DNA of 63,108 nt, the filler included, from Bigelowiella natans CCMP2755 (lineage: Eukaryota > Protista > Cercozoa), in NCBI GenBank assembly GCA_000320545.1. It is 7 parts of 7 records of this genome, joined end to end, with 100 filler letters (N's around TTAATTAATTAA, not from the genome) between each part and the next. Parts side by side here need not be neighbours in the genome. Positions count along the whole stretch, not along the records: positions 46,782 to 59,819 come from ADNK01003317.1; 6 more parts are not named here. One strand, given 5' to 3'. The notes under the pieces were generated by a model. It was given only the letters and a program-made list of their open reading frames with translations, did no database searches and had not been told where the DNA came from. Positions 46,782 through 59,819 of this stretch are shown here, in pieces (the stretch's first letter is position 1; every line of letters starts with the position of its first letter). Both the position numbers and the translations under genes were made by a program.

Positions 46782-46955
46782 CATTGTACTCAAATATTAA
46801 ACCTAATACTGTTTACTTAAACGTATTTTACACACGCTATAGTTCATATCAATATAATATAACAGTATTGCTTCGTTGTTTGGCGTCCTTCATGTCTCAC
46901 TCCTCCCCTCCCCCCTCCCCATCGCTCTGTTTCCTATTCCTACTCGTGGACGCAG

Positions 46956-47053
46956 AAAATCGATGTGGATGGCGGTGGAGATATTGATGCTGATGAGCTC
47001 AAAGCGGTGTGTTGTTGCAGCTGAAATGCAGCATTCGCGCGCACACACACACA

Positions 47054-47090
<37 letters not shown>

Positions 47091-47496
47091 AACGTGAGTG
47101 CATGCATTATTCCGAATATATCTGTTGATGTGGGTACGTTTTAGAAGATGAATGTGTGAGCTTGTTTGCAATACGAGGCCTCCGTAAAATAAGATGAAAA
47201 GCTTTCACAATAGACATGCCATATACTTCCTTGGTTTTCGTTTCTTCGTTAAAATCACCATCATCACCACCATCACCATCACCATCATCATCATCATCAT
47301 CATGTTCCACTATCACCCCGCACTCATCACTCACGCTTCCCCTTCCCCCCCCCCCCCCCCCCTCCAGACGCTGCACAAGTTCGATCAGAAGATCACTGCG
47401 AACGACATCACGACCATAATCAAAGAGGTTGGGCGTGGTAAAACTGTCATCAACAGGGAAGATTTCCACGAATTCGTAGAGAAGTATCTTGGATGA
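46956..47496 (+). CDS. C-terminal EF-hand pair (calmodulin-like), 5' partial
   Basis: KIDVDGGGDIDADELKA (canonical EF loop) spliced to TLHKFDQKITANDITTIIKEVGRGKTVINREDFHEFVEKYLG*. Confidence 0.85.
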
Positions 47497-47949
47497 TGAG
47501 CTCTTTCATATCTCCAAAAGCATATAGCCAGGCGGAACTTAATCGCACGTCGCCCCATCTCGTTGGACCCCTCTCCCCCTCTCTGTCTCTCTCTAGCTAT
47601 TGTAATGTCGGGTTGTGCATTTCCGTCCTCATGGAAAATTTTCCTGGGAATTTTGCTCATATTCGTACAATTTTGTTTTGTTTTGCAAATGAATATATAT
47701 TCTGGTATCAAATTCCGAGGTTTAGCAATGATTCCTGCCGTTTTTACCATGTCGTGGAACGATAATAACCCGTTTGAGTTTTCTACGTGTAGAGAGCGTA
47801 TTACACAAAATGCATATAGTTCTCGTAGTTTCTGAAACGACGATATTATATATATATATATATATATTTATATGTATATGTATATGTATATATACATATA
47901 TCTAAATTATGCACACACCATGTCATTTGTTATTATTACAATTTAAATT

Positions 47950-49000
47950 CATAGTGAGCCATCATTGAGACATGTCTAGCATGTGCGCGAGCATTGTTCA
48001 CATAATCTGGTTGCATGTGCCGCGACAATGATGATAATAAATTAAACTTCACTACCTAGATTGCGTGCAGCAGCCGAATTTGCACGTAAACGTGTGTTCG
48101 AAATTGTGACTACTGAAGATTGTTATCATCTGTGCAGCAAACCAATGTGTGAACGTGAGTCTAATCTAAACACGATGATCGCACAATTCTGCATTTGCAG
48201 CACATCTAGACATGCGACATGTCTAGATGTGTGCACACGTCCATGCGCATTGGCGCAGGCTACTTCAGCGTTGATATCATAACGCCTATCATGCCTTCAT
48301 GTTTGCAAAGCAGTCTAGCTAGCTAGCTAGTATTATTAGTAATGCATGTTGTCTTGGCATGCATTTGGCATCATCAAGCTAGCAAGCTCTAGAGCAGCAA
48401 CGTTTTCAACTAGACAACATCGATTGTCGTCGCACCTAGACGCATGGATACTCTAGTACTTGCATGGAACATGCACACTGTCTAGACTGCGTGCGTAGCA
48501 CGATGCAGGCTAGCAGCAAGTGACACGACGCTAGGACGGCACACTTTCAAATGTCTAATCATGTGCCATCTAGCTACTACGTTGTGTGTTTGCTGTCTAG
48601 CTAGTTTGGTACTCACTAGCTCAGATGTACGTCTGCATGTACTCACACACGCACTAACAAATTTGTAAGCTAGTACGTCAAGCAAGTGCTCTCACATGCT
48701 AGCATGCATGCAGCATGTTTACATTCTGTTGTGTGCATCTCCAGCTAGCTAGCATGTAAATGCACCCGCAACTAGGCTACTAGGCAACCTATTACAGTAG
48801 TTTGTTATTGCAACGTGCATCAGCACAAAAATGCTATTGAGATATCTAGCTAGCTAGATCTAGAGATCTAGAGGTGCAAGTATTTCTGCATACCTAGATA
48901 CGTCTAGACGTGTATGCGCGCCATAAATGCCTACATTATGTAATACAATATCTAATGTCGTGCGCTTGTGTGCATCGTATCGTACCGATGCGCTAAACAT
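47950..49000. other. Strongest CTAG/GCTAGC/GCATGC-rich island
   Basis: Runs such as GTCTAGCTAGCTAGCTAG, CTAGCTAGCTAGATCTAGAGATCTAGA, GCTAGCATGCATGC. Confidence 0.75.
48201..48231. repeat. Perfect 14-bp inverted repeat with 3-nt spacer
   Basis: CACATCTAGACATG-CGA-CATGTCTAGATGTG. Confidence 0.9.
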
Positions 49001-51168
49001 TAGCATTAAAAACAAGAAGGCCAGGAAAATTGATGAGCACGACATAATCTCGTTATGCTAACGCCGCACAAAGTTTCCATTGTCAATGCAGAAACGAAGG
49101 TAAGCGCACATTCTGCTATAATTATATGTGTACATGTAATATATATAGCAGAAGTCGACAGACATCGTCGAAACTACATAAGAGTTAAGACTTATGTCTT
49201 GCACAAAAATACCTATTACAAAAATCGACGTATGTAAGTAGAGCAGCCTTGTTTCAACCACTACTATCTGCATGTACAACACCAAGAGCAATCGTCGCAG
49301 AAGCAAATTCCTTCAGTCGGGGGAGGGGGGCAGTGTGTTAATAAGTCTTGGATCGTTTGGTGGTGGATATTTAATGATAAGATGATATAATCATGGTACG
49401 TGGTGTGGTGATGGCAGGATGTTGTTTTCATATTAGAAAGAAGAACCTGTGGTTATCATAAAGTCTCTCAATCCTCTTCGCGGACTCGAGGGTGGCATTG
49501 GCGTATTAGCCTACTGCTGAGCGATTCAACGCGTTCTGCGAATTATCGCTTGAATATGTTCAAAGCAAGCTTTACCACCGAGCACACATTGCGTTTTTCT
49601 AATAATAGCTATCGTCACTGTTAGAAAATTAACAACCGAAACCGTGCATCTATGTGTACAGAAAAGCAAAATACTTCCGTTCTACGAAGAAAATAATGAA
49701 GGAAACGGAAACGTGATGGATGAAGCTCAGCTTTCATAAAGATAGTTCAACGCACATGGCTAGCCAATGGGCCTTTCTGTTCAGAATAAATTGTCAAGTA
49801 GCGCCAGCTTTACTGCCGTCAGACAACACGGATTGAGTCATTTTCTTTTAAATATGAAATCCATCAAAAATAGGAGAATACTGTGAGGCAGTGTTGCTTT
49901 GTTGTTATGGCACAGAGGAGGAGAGGATGTGCTCATGTTCAAATCATTGTCGTACCACCATCCACGTCCTAGCTGTCAGGGTTTAAGCAGTGCACATAAA
50001 CGCCAACCCCCCCCCATCGGATTGCTGGTGGCCACATCCGTTCTGTTTCGAGGTTGAGCAGGAGTGACCTCCATGTGAAAACAAGGCCGATGGACCATTG
50101 CAGGAACCGAGTACGCTGTGTTGCTAAGTACTACCTCAGTATTCCACTGCTTTTTTGTCCCATCTGATTCTTTGCTACGACAATCTTTTTTCCATTGTCG
50201 CAAGTCGTGAAAACCATTTCTTTTCGTAACTTCGTTGCGACTTTTTAGTGGGGGAAAAAGGACGTTCTCGCCGAGAAAAATGCTCTTTTCTCCCTCAAAA
50301 AGGAGACTCCACCATCCAAGAGAATTGGTCCTTTTTGTGCTCCTTCCAGCTGGGTACACGGCTTTCTGTGGTATGAACAGTGTGAACATTCTCCGCTGGG
50401 AGGAAATCTTGGTAAATTCGCCAGAAAATAATTGCGAGAACGTTCATGCGTGGCTTGCTCTTGGATGTATGTCGCCACAACTGAATGCACAGGATTCTGT
50501 TGGATGTGCTTGTACAGTCGCGATGCCAACGGACAGATCTAGGTCTAGTCCTTGTCTCTGACTAAAATCGGCCTTTGTTTCTTGGTCTAAATCAAATTGT
50601 CAGGAGGACAAATCCAACTTGGAAATATCAAGGAGAGAATCATGCAAGGAGGGTACCCATTGGAAGGAACATGAAGCACGTCGCATGAAGGGCCCCATTC
50701 GGATAAATCAGGGTTGTGAGTAGGAAGATTCAAGGTCTGTTCCTGTCTTAGTGCTATCATCTACATCGTGCGAAATACGAAGGAGATTCGTTAGGGTGAC
50801 AATGACCTTTGACTAAACACATTATTCCGCATTAAAATTTTCCTCGAATGAAGTTACTCTTCGAATGATTGTTTGTGAGTAGAAAGCTTCAAGGACTATT
50901 CCTCTCTAGAGCTGTCATCTGCCTCTACACAAATTGTACATTTATTGCCAAGAACTTCCAAATTAGATCTCAAATAATATTTCTCAACATCCAGGCGACC
51001 ATCGTCCCAAATCCACACCTGCCTCGTTTTTCAAGATTAATTTTTTGTTACAATGTGCATATCACACACATATGCATACATGAGCATCTTTACTATTAAT
51101 GCTTTTAAGCACAAATATCATCACCGTAGGCGAGAACAGGAGGATGATGGGCAAAGATAAGATACAGA

Positions 51169-54100
51169 ATGCAGCAACAAACTCAATACATCCCTTACAG
51201 CAGTGATGATGCCGTGGACTACGAGAAGGATCAGATGATTTTCCCTTCAAGTAGCAGGCTTTTGGGTGGGAGTCCCGACGATGATGAGAGTGATGGAGAA
51301 GACATGAAGGTGCCTTCAGATGGAGCTGTGAATATCGATGCGACCACGAAAACCACAAATGTATCAATCTCAAAGGCAGATACGAAGCATGGCAGCACAT
51401 CTCAGCCACTTATGGTAGCTAAGGGGAGTTATAGCAAAGACGAAAAGGCATCGTCAGATAGAACTACACATCTTAATGTGGGCCTTAAACTTCAAAGAAC
51501 ATCAGAATCAAAGGCAGATACAAAGCATGGTAGCACACCTCAGTCACCTCAACTAGCTAAAGACAGCACTGCCGTCCAAAATTTACCAAATATCCGTAAA
51601 ACATCGCATCATAATGAGAAGATAAATAGCAAAGACGAGAAGAAATGCCCATGCGATCCTCTATGGCGTGCAAGACTTCTCACTGCTACAAAACAATCGC
51701 TGCAAGAAATAACCCCAGTCGATAGGAAGACACCTCTAATAGAAGATAAAGAGAGAATACCATCAACCACAGCCTTGGTCACGGCACTAAATGACCCCAA
51801 TCGAACAGATAGACCGGCCCTGTGGCTCATGTTCAAAAAATATAACGTGCATTTCGCTAAACTACATTTTTCTGAATGCGAAGAGGAGCACATTAACCAA
51901 TATTGTGAGCTGGCCCGAGTGCAGCCCATAGACGAGAAGACGAGAAAACTTCTTAAAACTTACGTGGAAATTTGGAGAGAGAAACTCGAAGTCAACTTTG
52001 ATATGGAGATGTACTCTCAAGGAATCAAGATCATGCTACAGAATTTACATCCAGAATCCTTCAACGGCAATCCACTCCTTCTTTTGAAGCTTGGTAGTAG
52101 TTTGATCGAAGATTTACCTGATGACAAGCTTTGGTACACAGAGGGTACCTATGATTCACATAAAGATATGCTTTATTCTTTGCACTATACTCTCCTTAAA
52201 ATCAGGAGGGTGTGCGAGGATGAAAAGACCAAAGAAAAGTCTGAGGATGACAAGTGGCAGCCCGACGGACATGACAGTCTCTATAAGCGTTTCAAAGCAA
52301 AATTAGCCATCATTGAGAAATCTAAATACTACCCCTTCCGCTACCTTGCCCGTCTCACCCAACAAAGTTTAGCATTTTTCAGAGCAAAACCTGAGACGAG
52401 AAGCCGCCTCTGGAGCTTTTTCTATGGTGTAAAAGGAGGCTTCCAACTCGCAAAATTCTTCTTGATCATTGTGCTAGGTATTCCTACGTTTGGGGCTTCA
52501 TTTCTATTCGATTCGAACGACTTAGAGAATGGATTGAAGAACCTTGCAGTTCTCAAAACAGGGGACCCAAGCATCAAAGATGAAAGCGTCGAGGATGCAT
52601 TGAGTACGATACGGCAGCTCAAACTGAGCGACTGGTATAAGACCGTTCTGGAGCTGCAAATCTGTGCTTCGAAGTGTTGTCATAACGACGCATCTGATGA
52701 TGATTTCAAGTTATTTCGAACAAAGTTCGAAAATAGTTTTATGACTTTTTCTGGCAACAAAAGCGAACGCAAATGCCTACATTTCAGCCTTGCGAGACTA
52801 TTGAATGTGATAGGTGTGATTGGCCATCCTGTGGTGAGCAACTACTGTGTTAAATTTTGTCACGACGTACTTAAAGACAACAATAGAAACAATCCATGGA
52901 AGCAGGAGGCGGTAGTTTTCGAGGAACTACTTAATTGCCTCGACACCATAGCTTCTCAAAATCGAAACCAAGACACACGAAAGCGTGCTAGTAATGTTTT
53001 GCAATGGCTTTGTTCTTCTCTCCCTGCTAATGAATCTAAGGCGAGAAGAATTTTACCTTGGAAGTCGGAACCCTCCTGGATCACTTCTGCCCGTAACCAT
53101 TTTGCAAGAGACATCAGAAATAAGAAAAAGAACCAAATCACACAACATGCAACATCTTCAAAGATTCGATACAATGAAAGGATTCACTCCATAGTCACAG
53201 AAATGATAAAAGAAAAAACCAAAGAAAGGTGGATGGAAGCTGCCATCCATTGCCAAGCGATAAAGAAATCTCAAAAGCTTAAAAAACAGTTAAAGGAACT
53301 CAAAAAGAAGCAGGAGGAACTTTATGGTAGCGATGAATACGTAGAAATGAAGCCATTCCTACATGGCGATAAGCCATGGTCCATTGCCACATCTTTCATC
53401 CAGCTCGCTATCATCAAGAAGGAAGTCAAAAGAGGAGGAGAACAAGAAGCGAATACTGCCAACAAGAACCAAACGCGCGACGAGCTTTTAGAGAGTTATG
53501 AGAGCATATATGCTGAGAAGCAGAATATATCTTTCTACGATCTTCCTGGAATTTTCCAGAAAACCCGAAAGGTGGTGCTTCTTGGAAGAGCTGGCATCGG
53601 CAAGACTACCGTTTGCAAGAAGTTAGCGCACCTATGGGCTAAGGGGGAATGGGGTCGCCATTTTGAGGCTGTGTACGTCCTCTCCATAAGAGTCTTGAAC
53701 ACATACATAGGAGAAGCAGACCTGGAGCATGCCATTGCGAGGTTTTGCTTCAAAGACGGAAAGACTCTGGACGAAGAAAGAGTGAGGAAGAGAGATAAGC
53801 TAATAGAGCATCAGCTGAAAGAAAGAGGTGACAAGGTTCTACTGATCTTGGATGGGTTGGATGAAGCCAATGATTCAACCAAAAAACTTCTAAACCAAGC
53901 TAGCAACGAAGAGAAATATGGCAAATCCTCTCAGCTCTGGGTATCACGGCCTTATGGAGTTGAAGCAAATCACAAGAAAGGGGCGACAGTCATAAAGAAT
54001 GTCGGTTTTAGTAGTGGGCAGGTAGAAAGGTATGTTCGAACATATTTTGAACTGGAAGAGGGTAAAGAAGTCAGTGTTAGAGATGACTCCAAAAATGCAT

Positions 54101-56820
54101 CAAATGCAGCACATTCTCTGATCGCCTACCTCAAAGATCGTCCTGATGTGAAAGGTATCGCCCACGTGCCAATCAACTTGCAGATACTCTGCAACCTTTG
54201 GAAAAGCGGCAAGGATAAAGTAGAGGCGGCCAGTGGCAGCATGACCATACTATACGATTTGATGGTGAAGAAGGTGTGGGAGCGATACGAAAAACACGAG
54301 GATGGAGGGCGTTATGTGCGAGTTGATGGTGAAAAGGTCATCATCAGGGACGATAAGAAGAAGCTTATGAAACTCCTGGGATGTATCGCTTTGGCAAGCT
54401 TCCAGGAGGCAGAGCGACAGATACTCATTGACGAACAGATTAGCGAAGCTGAAATCAACAAAGCTGTGGAGACAAACAAGATGTATTCTGAGCATAACCA
54501 CAAAGGTGGAAAAAGGGCCTTGCGAGAGCTTTTGGCCCAAAGTGGATTTTTGCGTAAGACTGATGACGGATCAAAGAGTGAGTTTCTGCATCTCACTTTC
54601 CAAGAGCGTTTTGCAGGTACTGAGCTTGCCCTGCAGCTACTCTCTAAAGATGACAACGAGAAAGCCGAAGCCGCCAAATATATCTCTGCCAATAAGTACA
54701 AAAGTGAACTCAAAATCGTGTTTTCTTTTCTGGCTGGAAAGGTGTATCTGAAAGGAAGTGAGGAAGGGCTTCAAAGACTTCTAAGAGCACTCGACATGGC
54801 TCCTCAGGAGGAAATGGGTTTACAACATAATCTTTTGAAAGTGTTTTGTATAGAACAGTGTCTAGAAGTTGGGATGATCGAGGAAGAACTTAAATCGATA
54901 GCTGATTACAGTGCACTAGTGACGGAACTTACTTCTTCGGCAATTGAGGACCTAAGGGTTGCCAGTTTGAGAAGATCAGACCCAATGTTACCTCGGCTCC
55001 TTGCAAATCTACCATGTTGGATGAAAACAACTGGTTTAGCAAGGGTGTACACTGTGGACTTCGAAGCTAGGCATGATATTAATCGACGCATAAAATCAAT
55101 AGTGGAATTGGGCCGCTCGGCCACTGCGGAAGCGCAGTCGGGGCTAGTAAAGGCACTCAGAGATAAAGATAAAAATGTACGCTATGAAGCAGTCAAGGCT
55201 ATCGGATATCTGGGAAGCTCCGCCATACCGGAAGCGCAGTTGGGGCTAGTAAAGGCACTCAGAGATGAAGACAGAATTGTACGCAAGACTGCAGCCAGTG
55301 CCATCGGAAAATTGGGCAGCTCCTTCACAGCGGAAGCGCAGTTGGGGCTAGTAAAGGCACTCAGAGATAAAGATATATATGTATACTATGAAGCAGTCAA
55401 AGCCATCGGATATCTGGGAAGCTCTGCCATACCGGAAGCGCAGTCGGGGCTAGTGAAGGCACTCAGAGATGAAGATAAATATGTACGCTGGTTTGCAGCC
55501 AGTGCCATCGAAGATTTGGGCAGCTCCGCCACAGCGGAAGCGCAGTTGGGGCTAGTAAAGGCACTCAGGGATGAAGACAAAGATGTACGCCAGGCAGCAG
55601 CCAGTGCCATCGGAAAGTTGCGCAGCTCCGCCATACCGGAAGCGCAGTCGGGGCTAGTGAAGGCACTAAAAGATGAAGACGGAACTGTACGCTGGTTTGC
55701 AGCCAGTGCCATCGAAGATTTGGGCAGCTCCGCCACAGCGCAAGCGCAGTCGGGGCTATTAAAGGCACTCAGAGATGAAGACAAATATGTACGCCAGGAA
55801 GCAGCCAGTGCCATCGGATATCTGGGAAGCTCCGCCACAGCGGAAGCGCAGTCGGGGCTAGTAGAGACACTCGAAGATGAAGACAGAACTGTACGCTATG
55901 AGGCAGCCAGTGCCATCGGAAAATTAAGCAGCTCCGCCACAGCGCAAGCGCAGTCGGGGCTAGTAGAGGCACTCAGAAATGAAGACATATTTGTACGCTG
56001 GGCAGCAAAGCATGCCATCAAAAGATTGGGCAGCTCCGCCACAGCGAAAGCGCAGTTGGGGCTAGTAAAGGCACTCAGAGATGAAGACAAAGATGTACGC
56101 CTGAGAGCAGCCTATGCCATCGGAAAATTGGGCAGCTCCGCCACAGCGGAAGTGCAGTCGGGGCTAGTAAATGCACTCAGAGATGAAGATGAAGATGTAC
56201 GCCAGGAAGTAGCCTATGCCATGGGATTGATTGCCAATGCGGTCAGAGCGAAAGCTGCGGAATCGACTTTTGTTGATGTTCTTTTGGATGGTCTACTTCT
56301 AACTGCTCCAAATGCAGAGATAGTAAGAGAAGTTTTCCTCAACACTAACTCCATCTTTAGGATCCTAGCATATTGCAAATCCAAACAGAAACTCATTAGA
56401 GAAGTTTTGTCACCAATGATCATCAATGACATTCTATACCATGAGCGTTTAGTCATAACTGAACAGAAGCAGGTCTTTCTTTACCAACAAGTTGGCAGTA
56501 CTCCTTTAAATGGCCTTCCCAGAGAAGGCATCGAAGAACTCCAAATGGAAATAAAAGCTTATCGGAACTGTGCTTTCGAATCTTACAAGGCATACAAGTA
56601 ATCTCAGATATTGAATGTGCTCATGAAATAAATGTACTCACTGTTTTGTCATGGTTGTGGGTTGTCTAAACGTCTTCCCAGATCAGGCACTTCGGCAGGC
56701 ATGACAACTGGGGAAGGAAACAAAGATGTCAAGGAAGATCACGACGTCAAAGACAACGAAGATGCTGTGAAAGAAAAAGACGCCGAAGCAGATGAAAGAA
56801 AATGCCTCAACAACTGGTAG
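51169..56820 (+). CDS. NLR-like STAND protein: N-terminal helical region + NACHT NTPase + HEAT-like repeat array; 1810-codon exon 51169-56597 with a probable small last exon 56682-56820
   Basis: Walker A VLLGRAGIGKTT, Walker B LLILDGLDE, VSRPY, PINLQILC, winged-helix EFLHLTFQERFAG; eleven 34-aa HEAT/PBS-lyase-type repeats. Confidence 0.95.
55120..56241 (+). repeat. Coding tandem array, 11 x 102 bp (34-aa HEAT-like repeats)
   Basis: Unit ATAEAQSGLVKALRDEDxxVRxxAxxAIxxLGSS; GGGCTAGTAAAGGCACTCAGAGAT recurs with 102-bp period (55141, 55243, 55345...). Confidence 0.97.
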
Positions 56821-57619
56821 AGAGCGGGTAGAAATAGAGAAATGTGCACAAGGAAGCAACTAATTGTGCGATTGATTTTGTTGCAATTCAGACGACAATG
56901 AAGCAAGCAGAGCCACCTTCTTGGAGCACAAGCTGGAATGCCTGTGACAACGCAAACCATCATTGTGAACGCTGCAACATGACATGCACATGTCATGCAT
57001 GTAAGAGCACAAGGGGCATTTCTCATGGACACCTCTAGACCTCAATGCAATGCACACACTTGCTAGCTGTGCACACAATGTCACTGTGTCTGTTGTCATC
57101 ATCACAACTTTGATCCCAGAACGAGAGATGAAATGCAAAGCATGCTAGCATGGTGCACATGGTTAAATGTTTTGTGATGATCAGCGCGCGGCTATTTCTA
57201 GATTTGTTGCGGTCTCCTTTTCACGCAGTAGTGCACGATGCCACGGCTGCTTGCGCTTCATCGGATCGCTGCGCACGCATGAGCCACTGTGCGCAATGCT
57301 TGTCAATGCTGGAATGCCGTGTGCAATTCGACTTGCTGTGATGCTGTCACATGCGTGCTATGGTTTGACATTTGTTCACAAATGATGATGAAAGGGAGCT
57401 GATTTCCATGGATGCCAGCTGCTAATGGCATCGACGACGATGATGAAACCGCCGCTCCTCGGCATGCATGTTCTGTCGCCATTGACTTCATTCACTTCGA
57501 AATGGCCATTTTGCGTTGTTTTCCCTCCATCAGAGTCGTCCACCGGTCACGTGCATCACCACGCACTAGCGCAACAGCCGCATCCTGCCACCTCATCAGC
57601 ACGAGATCAACTACCTTAG

Positions 57620-58112
57620 CGACGGTGAGTTGGGTCTCTCATTTTTGAAGGAGAAGCTTCCCACAACAATTGCACATGCGAACATCACTGGTCGTAGCGC
57701 GCCCAAGGGGGTGGGGGCTCGCTCGCAGGGAGAGCGCTTTTCGAGTCGGGCGCACCTGAGGAATCATCGAAGAATTAAGGATGGAGATTCACGATATGTA
57801 ATAATAAGCTGGTTGTTTAGGCAGTTGTAGAAGTTAGAGTAGTAGTATTAGTAACGACAGTAGTGGTAGTTGCAGCATTACCGGGCGTTTTCAGCCCCAT
57901 CCCCATTTGGCCCCCAGCGATAAGCGCTCCTCCAGCTCCTTGCTGGTGGGCAGGGATCTGTAAGGATAAAACAGCATGATTCTATGATGAGCGTATGGCG
58001 AGTTGTTGTCATTTGCAGCCTCCAACGCTGCTAATATTCTAAAAATCGGATATGTGGATTTTTCGTCTTTTAAAGCTAAACTCGTTTTTGTGGAACTTTT
58101 CCTCTCTCCCTT

Positions 58113-58180
<68 letters not shown>

Positions 58181-58336
58181 TGCGTGGAATGGTGTGGTTT
58201 GGCGTTGTGTGTTTCTTCTCACAGGAAGCAGATTTGGCACTGCAGCGCCTGGGGCAATTCCGAATGAGGGGCCTGCCATGCTCCTAAAGCAATTTTATTC
58301 GAAATAAAACAGAATACGTTTAACATCATTGTTGAT

Positions 58337-58382
<46 letters not shown>

Positions 58383-59438
58383 GTGTGTATAATATTGATA
58401 ATGCGAATTATTAAGAGCTAGCAGCCAATCACGATAAGATTGAATTCTTGATGTCTAATCTTTATAACATCATATATTTTTGTTTTCGCATCGAAAAACA
58501 TCGTAAAATGGCAGCCCTCCTCACTCATTCATTGATTTATTTTTTACGCTGTTCTTCTTCCTCTCCCAACACTCCCTCTCTAGAAAAGGCAATGTCATCT
58601 AAGCATCGATGTCTTCAGCAGCGTCTCCCCTCTCATTCAATCCCCTGGTAAGTCGTTATTCTCAATGGTGTGTTTCTAGACGTACGGCGAAGGCATCAGC
58701 GGCTGTGGCTGTTTGATAAATAAAACAAAAAACATTTTTCCATCGTCAACACATCAATTCCGCTAGCAGAGAATTTCAATGAAATTGTCAAAATATTTAC
58801 GATCTCTTCTGTTTGTGCGCGTCCATTCTCAATTCTCAATGCATAGAAGCATCGTATTTACCTCGCCTCCTGCCATTGGCGGTGTTGCGCCCATTATGTT
58901 GGCTGATTTGGTACGATATTCATCCATCGAATTATTGACCTCTCGTCAAGACGTGGAATACATGACGACATCGACGACGATTATGAGGAGGAAGGGGTAA
59001 GGGGGAAGGGGGAAGGGTGTTTTTCTTGATGACAAAATCGATAGTGTTTTTACCAGATCATCACCATCATCATCATCATCATCATCATCATGATTCATCA
59101 TCACAACAACCTAGCGACATGGCGGGTGACTGCAGCGAAGACTGGAAAAACGACGGCACCGGCACACTTTAGATGTATATAGTAGGATAATAATACACGC
59201 AATAAATTCTTTTTAGAGAAGTTATAAATTATGATGATGATGACGACGATGAAGGTGATGGTGATGATGATCATGATCATGATGCTGATGATGCTGATGA
59301 CAGCGGAACAAAGCGTATATCCCCATCGTCATCATATTGTACGCATAGAATAGCACATACAATCAATCGATATACGACTTCATGCGTTAAAGTATCACCT
59401 TGGGTTCACCATATGTGCCAGATTTTGACCTGCGGATA

Positions 59439-59500
<62 letters not shown>

Positions 59501-59612
59501 AAAGGGCTCATCATCACACCCACTTCCATCGCTAATCATATCCCAAAATTAGCAGTATGAGTCTTACCGAAAGATGCCCCCCCTGGAGTCGGAGCTGATG
59601 GTTCGCGATACT
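57620..59612 (-). CDS. Low-complexity Pro/Gly/Met-rich protein C-terminus on many small exons, 5' partial
   Basis: In-phase small exons YREPSAPTPGGASF-QNLAHMVNP-VPVPSFFQSSLQSPAMSL-NIMGATPPMAGGE-PQPLMPSP..SMAGPSFGIAPGAAVPNLLP-IPAHQQGAGGALIAGGQMGMGLKTP; terminal exon uncertain. Confidence 0.5.
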
Positions 59613-59819
59613 GAATAGAGAGAGGGAGAGCGAGAGACAGAGAGAGAGAGAGAAAAAAGTTCACAACGTGCGGTTGCAAACATGCTTCTGATGCTTCGCC
59701 ATTATCACCTTCACCATCACCATCATCATCATCATCATCATCATTATCATCATCATCATTACCATCATCATCATCATCATTATCATCACCATCATCACCA
59801 TCGTCATCATCATCATCAC

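Follow-up and report, generated by a model that had tools for sequence, protein, structure and literature searches.

A transcribed NACHT-HEAT gene of Bigelowiella natans whose repeats vary at predicted ligand-contact positions

The window analysed here is a stretch of 63,108 nucleotides from Bigelowiella natans CCMP2755 in which 7 parts of the genome are joined end to end; all coordinates below are those of the window. One piece, from ADNK01003317.1 (46,782-59,819), carries a single long open reading frame (ORF) at 51169-56601 on the + strand, of 1810 codons, with an array of eleven similar repeats inside it. The encoded protein has the tripartite layout of STAND/NLR proteins: a helical N-terminal domain (N-domain, amino acids (aa) 197-694), a NACHT NTPase domain (aa 801-961) and an array of HEAT repeats (aa 1314-1687). 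Coordinates of the individual features are given in Table 1.

The repeats were detected by TRF as 11.0 copies of a 102-bp unit at 55108-56226, with 80% matches and an additional super-period of 204 bp. Eleven units of 34 aa were obtained when the ORF was cut in frame at 55108. A first-pass annotation of the same DNA had placed eleven 102-bp units at 55120-56241; the two descriptions concern one array, read in registers 12 nt apart, and the four lists of residue pairs given there were reproduced exactly (44 of 44 pairs), positions 18-19, 22-23, 25-26 and 29-30 of that annotation being unit positions 22-23, 26-27, 29-30 and 33-34 in the 55108 register kept here. Mean nucleotide identity among units is 81.5%, with 89.1% over the 26 scaffold codons and 56.9% over the 8 variable codons. 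At the amino-acid level, identity is 81% for the scaffold and 28% for the variable positions, and 68.5% (range 53-88%) between pairs of whole units. Each of the eleven units displays a distinct eight-residue signature at the variable positions (11 of 11).

Two published measures of repeat conservation were applied. The mean identity of units to their consensus, 0.79, which is a Psim-like figure, lies above the Psim (repeat similarity to consensus) >= 0.7 used in PMC13449251. The units fall below the threshold for high internal conservation (HIC) of PMC4986451, which is >= 85% internal identity over >= 100 aa, with their 68.5% amino-acid and 81.5% nucleotide identity. Units 1-6 (55108-55719) alternate between ...ATAEAQ... 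and ...AIPEAQ... types, while units 6-10 are all of the ...ATAEAQ... type. The 204-bp super-period arises because the first six units alternate in this way, and the alternation points to amplification in two-unit blocks. A diversity-generating retroelement was considered as the source of variation and dropped: the gene is eukaryotic and neither a reverse transcriptase nor a template repeat lies nearby.

The first-pass annotation had proposed a HEAT-type array with variable residues on one face of helix 2, the surface randomised in engineered alphaRep binders. Pfam assigned the array to HEAT_2 (E 8.6e-55) and HEAT_PBS (E 1e-15), and the two-helix repeat fold predicted for it agrees with membership of the HEAT_2/PBS-lyase type. 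By sequence, the best PDB matches were alphaRep designs (E 1e-55 to 5e-67), with the natural template MTH187 next. In the AlphaFold2 (AF2) model of aa 1271-1810, the array is modelled with a pLDDT of about 90 as alternating 10- and 17-residue helices, preceded by an N-cap helix, and Foldseek placed this model on alphaRep structures with TM-scores of 0.83-0.86 and a root-mean-square deviation of 2.4-3.2 Å.

All eight variable positions are located in the long helix (helix B), at i, i+1, i+4, i+5, i+7, i+8, i+11 and i+12. They span an arc of 160 degrees (P = 0.004 for random choices of 8 of 17 positions), so that in the model they form a single stripe on helix B, as proposed. In alphaRep complexes, the variable positions 18, 19, 22, 23, 26 and 30 form the concave target-binding face (PMC3754942). 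These six randomised positions align with unit positions 22, 23, 26, 27, 30 and 34, and the natural variation coincides with all of them and includes two more, corresponding to 25 and 29. The stripe is thus predicted to lie on the concave face, its exposure being taken from homology to alphaRep and not from coordinates.

The eight variable codons had been chosen from the same data; the test set was therefore the six positions fixed beforehand from the alphaRep literature (PMC3754942). Of the 49 minimal amino-acid changes, 24 fall in these 6 of the 34 columns (binomial P = 5e-7). Parsimony counts on a neighbour-joining tree of the units gave an omega (dN/dS) of about 4.1 at the six codons (P = 1.5e-8 versus omega = 1), compared with 0.74 at the other 28; omega was 3.6-3.7 when the eight post-hoc codons were used. 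By pairwise Nei-Gojobori estimates, dN/dS was about 5.0 at the eight variable codons versus 0.65 at the scaffold. The claim that amino-acid change concentrates in four adjacent-codon pairs is upheld by these counts, and the per-codon dN/dS proposed as its check is above 1 at the variable codons and below 1 at the scaffold. The accompanying statement that scaffold silent sites are almost invariant was too strong. Synonymous divergence (pS, the proportion of synonymous differences) is 0.144 in both codon classes, which means that the variable codons are not simply older than the scaffold; on the unit tree, the scaffold codons account for about 15 synonymous changes. The pattern looked for in HIC repeats, with residues under positive selection grouped on the face predicted to bind, is therefore found here, as judged by the omega of 4.1, the one-sided stripe (P = 0.004) and the match to the alphaRep interface.

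A similar array could also be produced without positive selection, by a young tandem amplification in which the scaffold is constrained and the helix-B positions drifted or were inherited different, an omega above 1 being then an artefact of small counts, multi-nucleotide changes or exchange between units. Synonymous sites are indeed few (about 25 in all and about 4 in the variable codons), and the same positions are naturally the most variable ones across the HEAT-like family, which was the basis of the alphaRep design. A post-hoc multinomial test for concentration in the 'top 8 columns', superseded by the tests on a-priori positions, gave only P = 0.075. However, relaxation alone predicts an omega of about 1, not the 3.6-5 obtained here with P = 1.5e-8 at the a-priori positions, and the equal pS of the two codon classes and the distinct signatures of all eleven units also speak against it. 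We therefore regard this explanation as unlikely.

The NACHT domain is intact, so that the description of the protein as NLR-like stands. Its Pfam score of 62.9 bits is well above the gathering cut-off of 26.7, and its motifs conform to the Walker A (GxxxxGK[ST]) and Walker B (hhhhDGLDE) patterns of STAND/NLR-like NACHT domains. GRAGIGKTT, LLILDGLDE and SRP are invariant across the relatives in alignment A1.

The N-domain was modelled by AF2 with a pLDDT of 83. It is rare, with 78 homologues among 1.8 billion cluster representatives, and its best named relatives are Bacteroidota proteins from metagenome-assembled genomes (MAGs), with up to 49% identity. Pfam gave no match for the query N-domain and ARM_5 in 5 of 41 relatives; Foldseek and a wide structural search returned only generic ARM/HEAT solenoids (Z <= 10.7). 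A hydrophobic stretch, FQLAKFFLIIVLGIPTFGASFLF, lies at 52429-52560 (aa 421-463), within a loop that the N-domain model renders with low confidence. When aligned with the relative P0002, it has 7 residues opposite a gap and the rest opposite non-hydrophobic residues; it could be a lineage-specific membrane-associating segment. The N-terminus upstream of the N-domain (aa 1-196) is disordered; no homologue of it was detected and it has no counterpart in the bacterial-type relatives. The motif SKADTKHGST occurs twice in this region, about 46 residues apart. N-terminal of the NACHT domain, Pfam, NCBIfam and PADLOC identified no effector or signalling domain of the death-fold, TIR, HET, HeLo, nuclease or protease types, and PADLOC returned only generic HEAT-ARM matches for the protein.

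The stretch is present in 14 DNA-like sequencing runs and in six smaller runs guessed to be RNA. In contigs of the RNA-like runs X15 and X16 the leader introns are removed (Table 1). Unspliced contigs starting at 50907 were also observed in X15-X17, showing that in some transcripts intron 2 is retained, or is bypassed by a start near 50907; in X17 most transcripts run unspliced from about this position. One 49-nt segment is present in two diverged copies, at the starts of exons 1 and 2 (local alignment of 50713-50761 with 50872-50920), which suggests a local duplication of a promoter-proximal exon. An in-frame TGA at 51145 precedes the ATG at 51169, so translation cannot begin upstream of 51169 within exon 3. 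A short upstream ORF of 20 codons in another frame (51144-51206, ATGATG...) overlaps this start codon and may affect translation.

At the 3′ end, the contigs of X15-X17 match up to 56597 while their records continue for a further 357-388 nt, and the depth in the last bin fits exactly 19 further letters from 56682, directly after an acceptor, CCCAG, ending at 56681. Because the RNA-like contigs leave at the 56597 donor, with this acceptor and this depth, the TAA at 56599 that closes the raw 1810-codon ORF is most likely intronic. Exons were treated one by one, exon 4 being translated alone from 56683; it adds 46 residues to the protein (one Lys and 45 others). Gene callers that ignore splicing will truncate the protein at the 56599 TAA.

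Taken together, these data identify a transcribed eukaryotic gene with spliceosomal introns, and not a contaminant. That the sequence might be bacterial contamination, a chimeric assembly or a defunct fragment left by horizontal transfer is suggested by the bacterial nature of the closest relatives (see below) and by the long ORF being a single exon, but the evidence contradicts it. RNA-like contigs from two studies lack the GT..AG introns, and three such runs end at the 56597 donor; the gene is contiguous in a DNA contig with microsatellite-rich non-coding flanks; the 1810-codon frame and all NACHT motifs are intact; and the GC content at third codon positions (GC3) of the gene, 0.45, fits the flanks (0.43-0.44) and not the contigs of bacterial kin (0.48-0.52). 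We consider such an origin extremely improbable. The flanks (46782-50700 and 56821-59819) contain no credible ORF and are dense in microsatellites, including (CA)25, (ATC)17, (AT)30, (CTCT)11, (TG)20, (TA)19, (ATG)23 and (AG)n; a long CAT/CATCAT tract is found at the end of the piece.

Table 1. Exons, introns and protein regions of the gene, in window coordinates
Feature	Position	Strand	Evidence and remarks
Exon 1, 5′ leader (approximate start)	50703..50789	+	Loose contig end in X15 and X16 maps exactly to 50703-50732; GT donor at 50790
Intron 1, 90 nt, GT..AG	50790..50879	+	Implied by loose end 50703-50732; boundary predicted from splice dinucleotides
Exon 2, 5′ leader	50880..50935	+	Diverged copy of exon 1 start
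Intron 2, 194 nt, GT..AG	50936..51129	+	Joint 50935->51130 in X15 and X16
Exon 3	51130..56597	+	Coding sequence from ATG 51169, 1809 codons + 2 nt; RNA-like contigs stop matching at 56597
N-terminal low-complexity region, aa 1-196, with duplicated short motif	51169..51756	+	Homology with P0002 begins at aa 197
N-domain, aa 197-~694, all-helical ARM/HEAT-like solenoid then long helix	51757..53250	+	AF2 model, homologues
NACHT NTPase domain, aa 801-961	53569..54051	+	Pfam PF05729, E 4e-17; Walker A GRAGIGKTT, Walker B LLILDGLDE, then sensor-like SRP
Post-NACHT helical region and degenerate N-cap repeat, aa 962-1313	54052..55107	+	Conserved with P0001 and P0002; N-cap helix in model
Eleven 102-bp (34-aa) HEAT_2/PBS-type repeats	55108..56229	+	Hypervariable codons at unit positions 22, 23, 26, 27, 29, 30, 33, 34
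C-terminal cap region, aa 1688-1809 (~120 aa)	56230..56597	+	Conserved with bacterial-type relatives; aligns to C-termini of P0001 and P0002; low model confidence
Intron 3, 84 nt, GTAATC..CCCAG, phase 2	56598..56681	+	Predicted; not seen as a listed joint
Exon 4, coding part	56682..56820	+	Completes a Lys codon and adds 45 charged residues; ends with TAG 56818-56820

The best matches to the NACHT region were two metagenomic proteins, P0001 and P0002, with about 50% identity. The alignment with P0002 begins at aa 197 and reaches the C-terminus, and that with P0001 begins at aa 696. P0002 is encoded among closely packed co-directional genes. P0001 comes from a bacterial-type contig of 21.6 kb, where (at L001:1-17015) it is one of three tandem NACHT-HEAT paralogues that are followed by a resolvase gene and a PIN gene. 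P0001 is also fused to TPR and OTU-like domains; the region looks like a mobile island, possibly of a host-associated bacterium. Among the other relatives, P0004 lies between yidC/dnaN and murB in a Bacteroidota MAG, and P0003 beside dnaA, uvrD and prfA-type genes. The first-pass annotation was silent on these bacterial closest kin, as it was on the intronic TAA at 56599 and on the missing recognisable effector domain.

In a FastTree tree of 50 NACHT regions, many of them without taxon label, the query groups with P0001 and P0002 (support 100) inside a clade of 21 rows (support 100); every member of this clade with a known context is bacterial. Sequences from fungi, Glomeribacter and fish (NLRC3-like) fall elsewhere, outside this clade. 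A gene of eukaryotic structure is therefore nested in a bacterial clade, on a FastTree tree with many unlabelled rows, as expected for a horizontal origin. An old transfer probably took place in the direction from bacteria to eukaryote, a level of confidence that we do not exceed because many tree rows are unlabelled. This agrees with the published view that NACHT genes have passed from bacteria, often intracellular ones, into eukaryotes on several occasions (bioRxiv 10.1101/2022.07.19.500537). Under this scenario, the bacterial gene would have entered the eukaryote long ago, possibly from a Bacteroidota-like organism living as its symbiont or taken as prey, and would later have acquired its leader introns and the additional 3′ exon. 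A scan of GTDB genomes gave, among the matches listed, at least one locus in a Francisellaceae MAG at 26% identity, which says little on donors, and a scan of JGI metagenomes gave only distant kin (21-38% identity).

Regular arrays recur in the family. In 16 of 54 NACHT-region relatives, self-identity reaches at least 50% over 170 aa at a single lag of 29-42 aa, and several arrays are more regular than that of the query, such as those of a Waddliaceae MAG protein (31-aa units) and of P0017 (33-aa units). These regular arrays vary at the same DEDxxVRx..x..x positions, and further such arrays were found in a second protein search. The array is thus not unusual as a type within its family. The arrays of the nearest kin P0001 and P0002 are irregular, and homogenisation in the query is therefore lineage-specific. 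No array more than 43% identical was found in an array-focused protein search, so that the database contains neither a close paralogue nor a donor array; the organism's own proteome seems absent from the database searched, since the window's protein was not returned.

Our preferred interpretation, in which we have moderate confidence, is that the array constitutes the ligand-sensing end of a STAND/NLR-type switch, with a putative ligand, encoded by a transcribed eukaryotic gene. The units would be the product of recent tandem duplications, some of them of two-unit blocks, and of sequence exchange from one unit to another, with selection keeping or driving diversity at the contact residues. Under such selection, each repeat would contribute a separate patch to one long groove, and a non-self or altered-self protein bound there may then release NACHT autoinhibition and lead to nucleotide-dependent oligomerisation. 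The output would pass through the helical N-domain by recruitment of a downstream partner, as supposed here because no enzymatic or death-fold effector is present.

Several points weigh against this interpretation. The omega values come from paralogous units of one allele, with about 25 synonymous sites and a parsimony tree that exchange between units can distort. No effector domain was recognisable by Pfam, NCBIfam, PADLOC or structural searches, and the tree behind the proposed direction of transfer was built with FastTree, most of its rows being without taxon label. When four assembled short-read runs from four studies, possibly of one strain, were compared over 50750-56700, not one base differed over 5951 bases. 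The short-read assemblies all break inside the array, into pieces of 111-229 nt, so that repeat number is unreadable; the pieces present were identical in the four runs. On the separate matter of paralogues, the depth of 88-134 over array contigs in a DNA run, versus 78-83 over the flanks, speaks weakly against a large number of near-identical paralogous arrays, with the caveat that depth does not equal copy number.

Some of these points would also suit a housekeeping or regulatory STAND scaffold, such as an assembly factor or adaptor, whose HEAT groove binds a fixed endogenous partner and whose array owes its regularity to slippage. The lack of a detectable death-fold, nuclease, TIR or other effector, the N-domain being another helical solenoid, the purely generic HEAT matches given by PADLOC and the absence of polymorphism in the four runs are all compatible with such a role. 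A fixed partner, however, predicts purifying selection on the groove, not an omega of about 4 with 11 different signatures, and conserved repeat arrays are strongly associated with NLR-type ATPases of non-self recognition (PMC13449251). We hold this role to be improbable. A het-like allorecognition locus, in which alleles differing in repeat number or order would trigger incompatibility upon cell fusion, appears less probable still. Its appeal lies in the repeat design, which is that of Podospora HET-D/E-type and other HIC NLRs, where conservation and length polymorphism co-occur; yet no HET or HeLo-type domain is present, and the runs from four studies, possibly of one strain, show no variation.

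Beyond the sensory role that we favour, a more elaborate scenario can be proposed, which we consider speculative and rather doubtful. A bacterial NACHT-HEAT sensor would have been captured by a eukaryote and domesticated there with added leader introns and a 3′ exon, and its irregular HEAT region rebuilt into a self-shuffling array of idealised 34-aa modules, giving a natural alphaRep library, variable between strains in unit number and order, that recognises symbiont, prey, viral or allelic proteins. The HIC-repeat diversity mechanism familiar from fungal NLRs would then have arisen independently here, through a horizontal transfer of its own.

Much of the background to these interpretations is already published, and our results do not overturn current views: NACHT-HEAT proteins, NLRs with HIC repeats and bacterial origins of eukaryotic NACHT genes have all been reported. 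The NACHT-HEAT architecture has been described in bacteria (bioRxiv 10.1101/2022.07.19.500537) as well as in fungi and Rickettsiales (PMC12258605). For fungal WD40, ANK and TPR repeats, near-identical units of NLRs are described as carrying residues under positive selection on the binding face, and this has been noted for HEAT (PMC4986451). One Podospora NACHT gene is listed with HIC HEAT repeats, and HIC repeats are reported to occur, alongside length polymorphism, in NLRs of all domains of life, where highly conserved repeat arrays are strongly associated with NLR-type ATPases of non-self recognition (PMC13449251).

The closest relatives over the N-domain, NACHT, array and C-cap are the bacterial NACHT-HEAT STAND proteins (bNACHT-type 'antigen receptor') of Bacteroidota, Chlamydiota, Cyanobacteriota and others, many of which carry regular HEAT arrays with the same variable positions. 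In contrast to these, the gene described here has introns, microsatellite flanks, an extra N-terminal low-complexity region and a 3′ exon, and the anti-phage role does not apply to it. The second protein search also found NACHT-HEAT proteins in bdelloid rotifers, Mortierellaceae and Xylariaceae. Those of the bdelloid rotifers Adineta and Rotaria (P0145, P0149, P0160, P0187 and P0209) have a TIR_2 Pfam match in 4 of 5 cases. Bdelloid rotifers are rich in horizontally acquired genes. The fungal N-NACHT/HEAT NLRs and the Mortierellaceae and rotifer NACHT-HEAT(-TIR) proteins resemble the present protein in combining a eukaryotic NACHT with HEAT_2 and in a suspected bacterial origin, but their NACHT is only 24-27% identical and falls in the other half of the tree, and identity over the array is at most 43%. 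Membership of the animal NACHT-LRR NLRs is not supported, as no LRR was detected by Pfam and the fish NLRC3-like rows are far away in the tree.

With the fungal HIC-repeat NLRs, such as Podospora HET-D/E, the NWD family and one NACHT-HEAT gene, the protein shares a NACHT followed by near-identical repeats in which change gathers, with omega above 1, on a few surface positions of the face predicted to bind. The first-pass annotation had drawn this parallel, which is apt in the light of PMC4986451 and PMC13449251. It is an analogy only: no HET or WD40 match was found by Pfam, as membership of the Podospora HET-E/HNWD family (HET + NACHT + WD40) would imply. The repeats are HEAT and not WD40, ANK or TPR; no HET, HeLo, PNP_UDP or sesB effector is present; and the NACHT falls in a different clade of the tree. 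The fungal side of the comparison is also marked by polymorphic strains and by exchange between paralogues. If the proposed function is correct, the gene would provide a non-fungal, HEAT-repeat case of the recurring design in which a NACHT switch carries near-identical repeats whose contact residues are hypervariable.

The array itself is best compared with alphaRep and its natural PBS-lyase/HEAT_2 templates (MTH187), with which it shares the scaffold motif ...L[IV]KAL[KR]DEDxxVRxxAxxA[LI]Gx... (about 36-39% identity), the repeat fold and, for alphaRep, the same six library positions on the concave face. The unit is of 34 aa versus 31, with three extra loop residues, and has two more variable positions, corresponding to 25 and 29. 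It is fused to a NACHT ATPase in a protein of 1.8 kaa, whereas alphaRep stands alone with designed caps. The array can thus be seen as a natural counterpart of the engineered binder scaffold, with its six library positions and two more, and could inform binder design. As relatives on the donor side are still identifiable, the rewiring of a bacterial STAND sensor after transfer to a eukaryote could be followed by comparison. Three things are particular to this gene: its repeats are of the HEAT type, they match an engineered binder library one to one, and its bacterial ancestry is traceable even though it belongs to a eukaryote.

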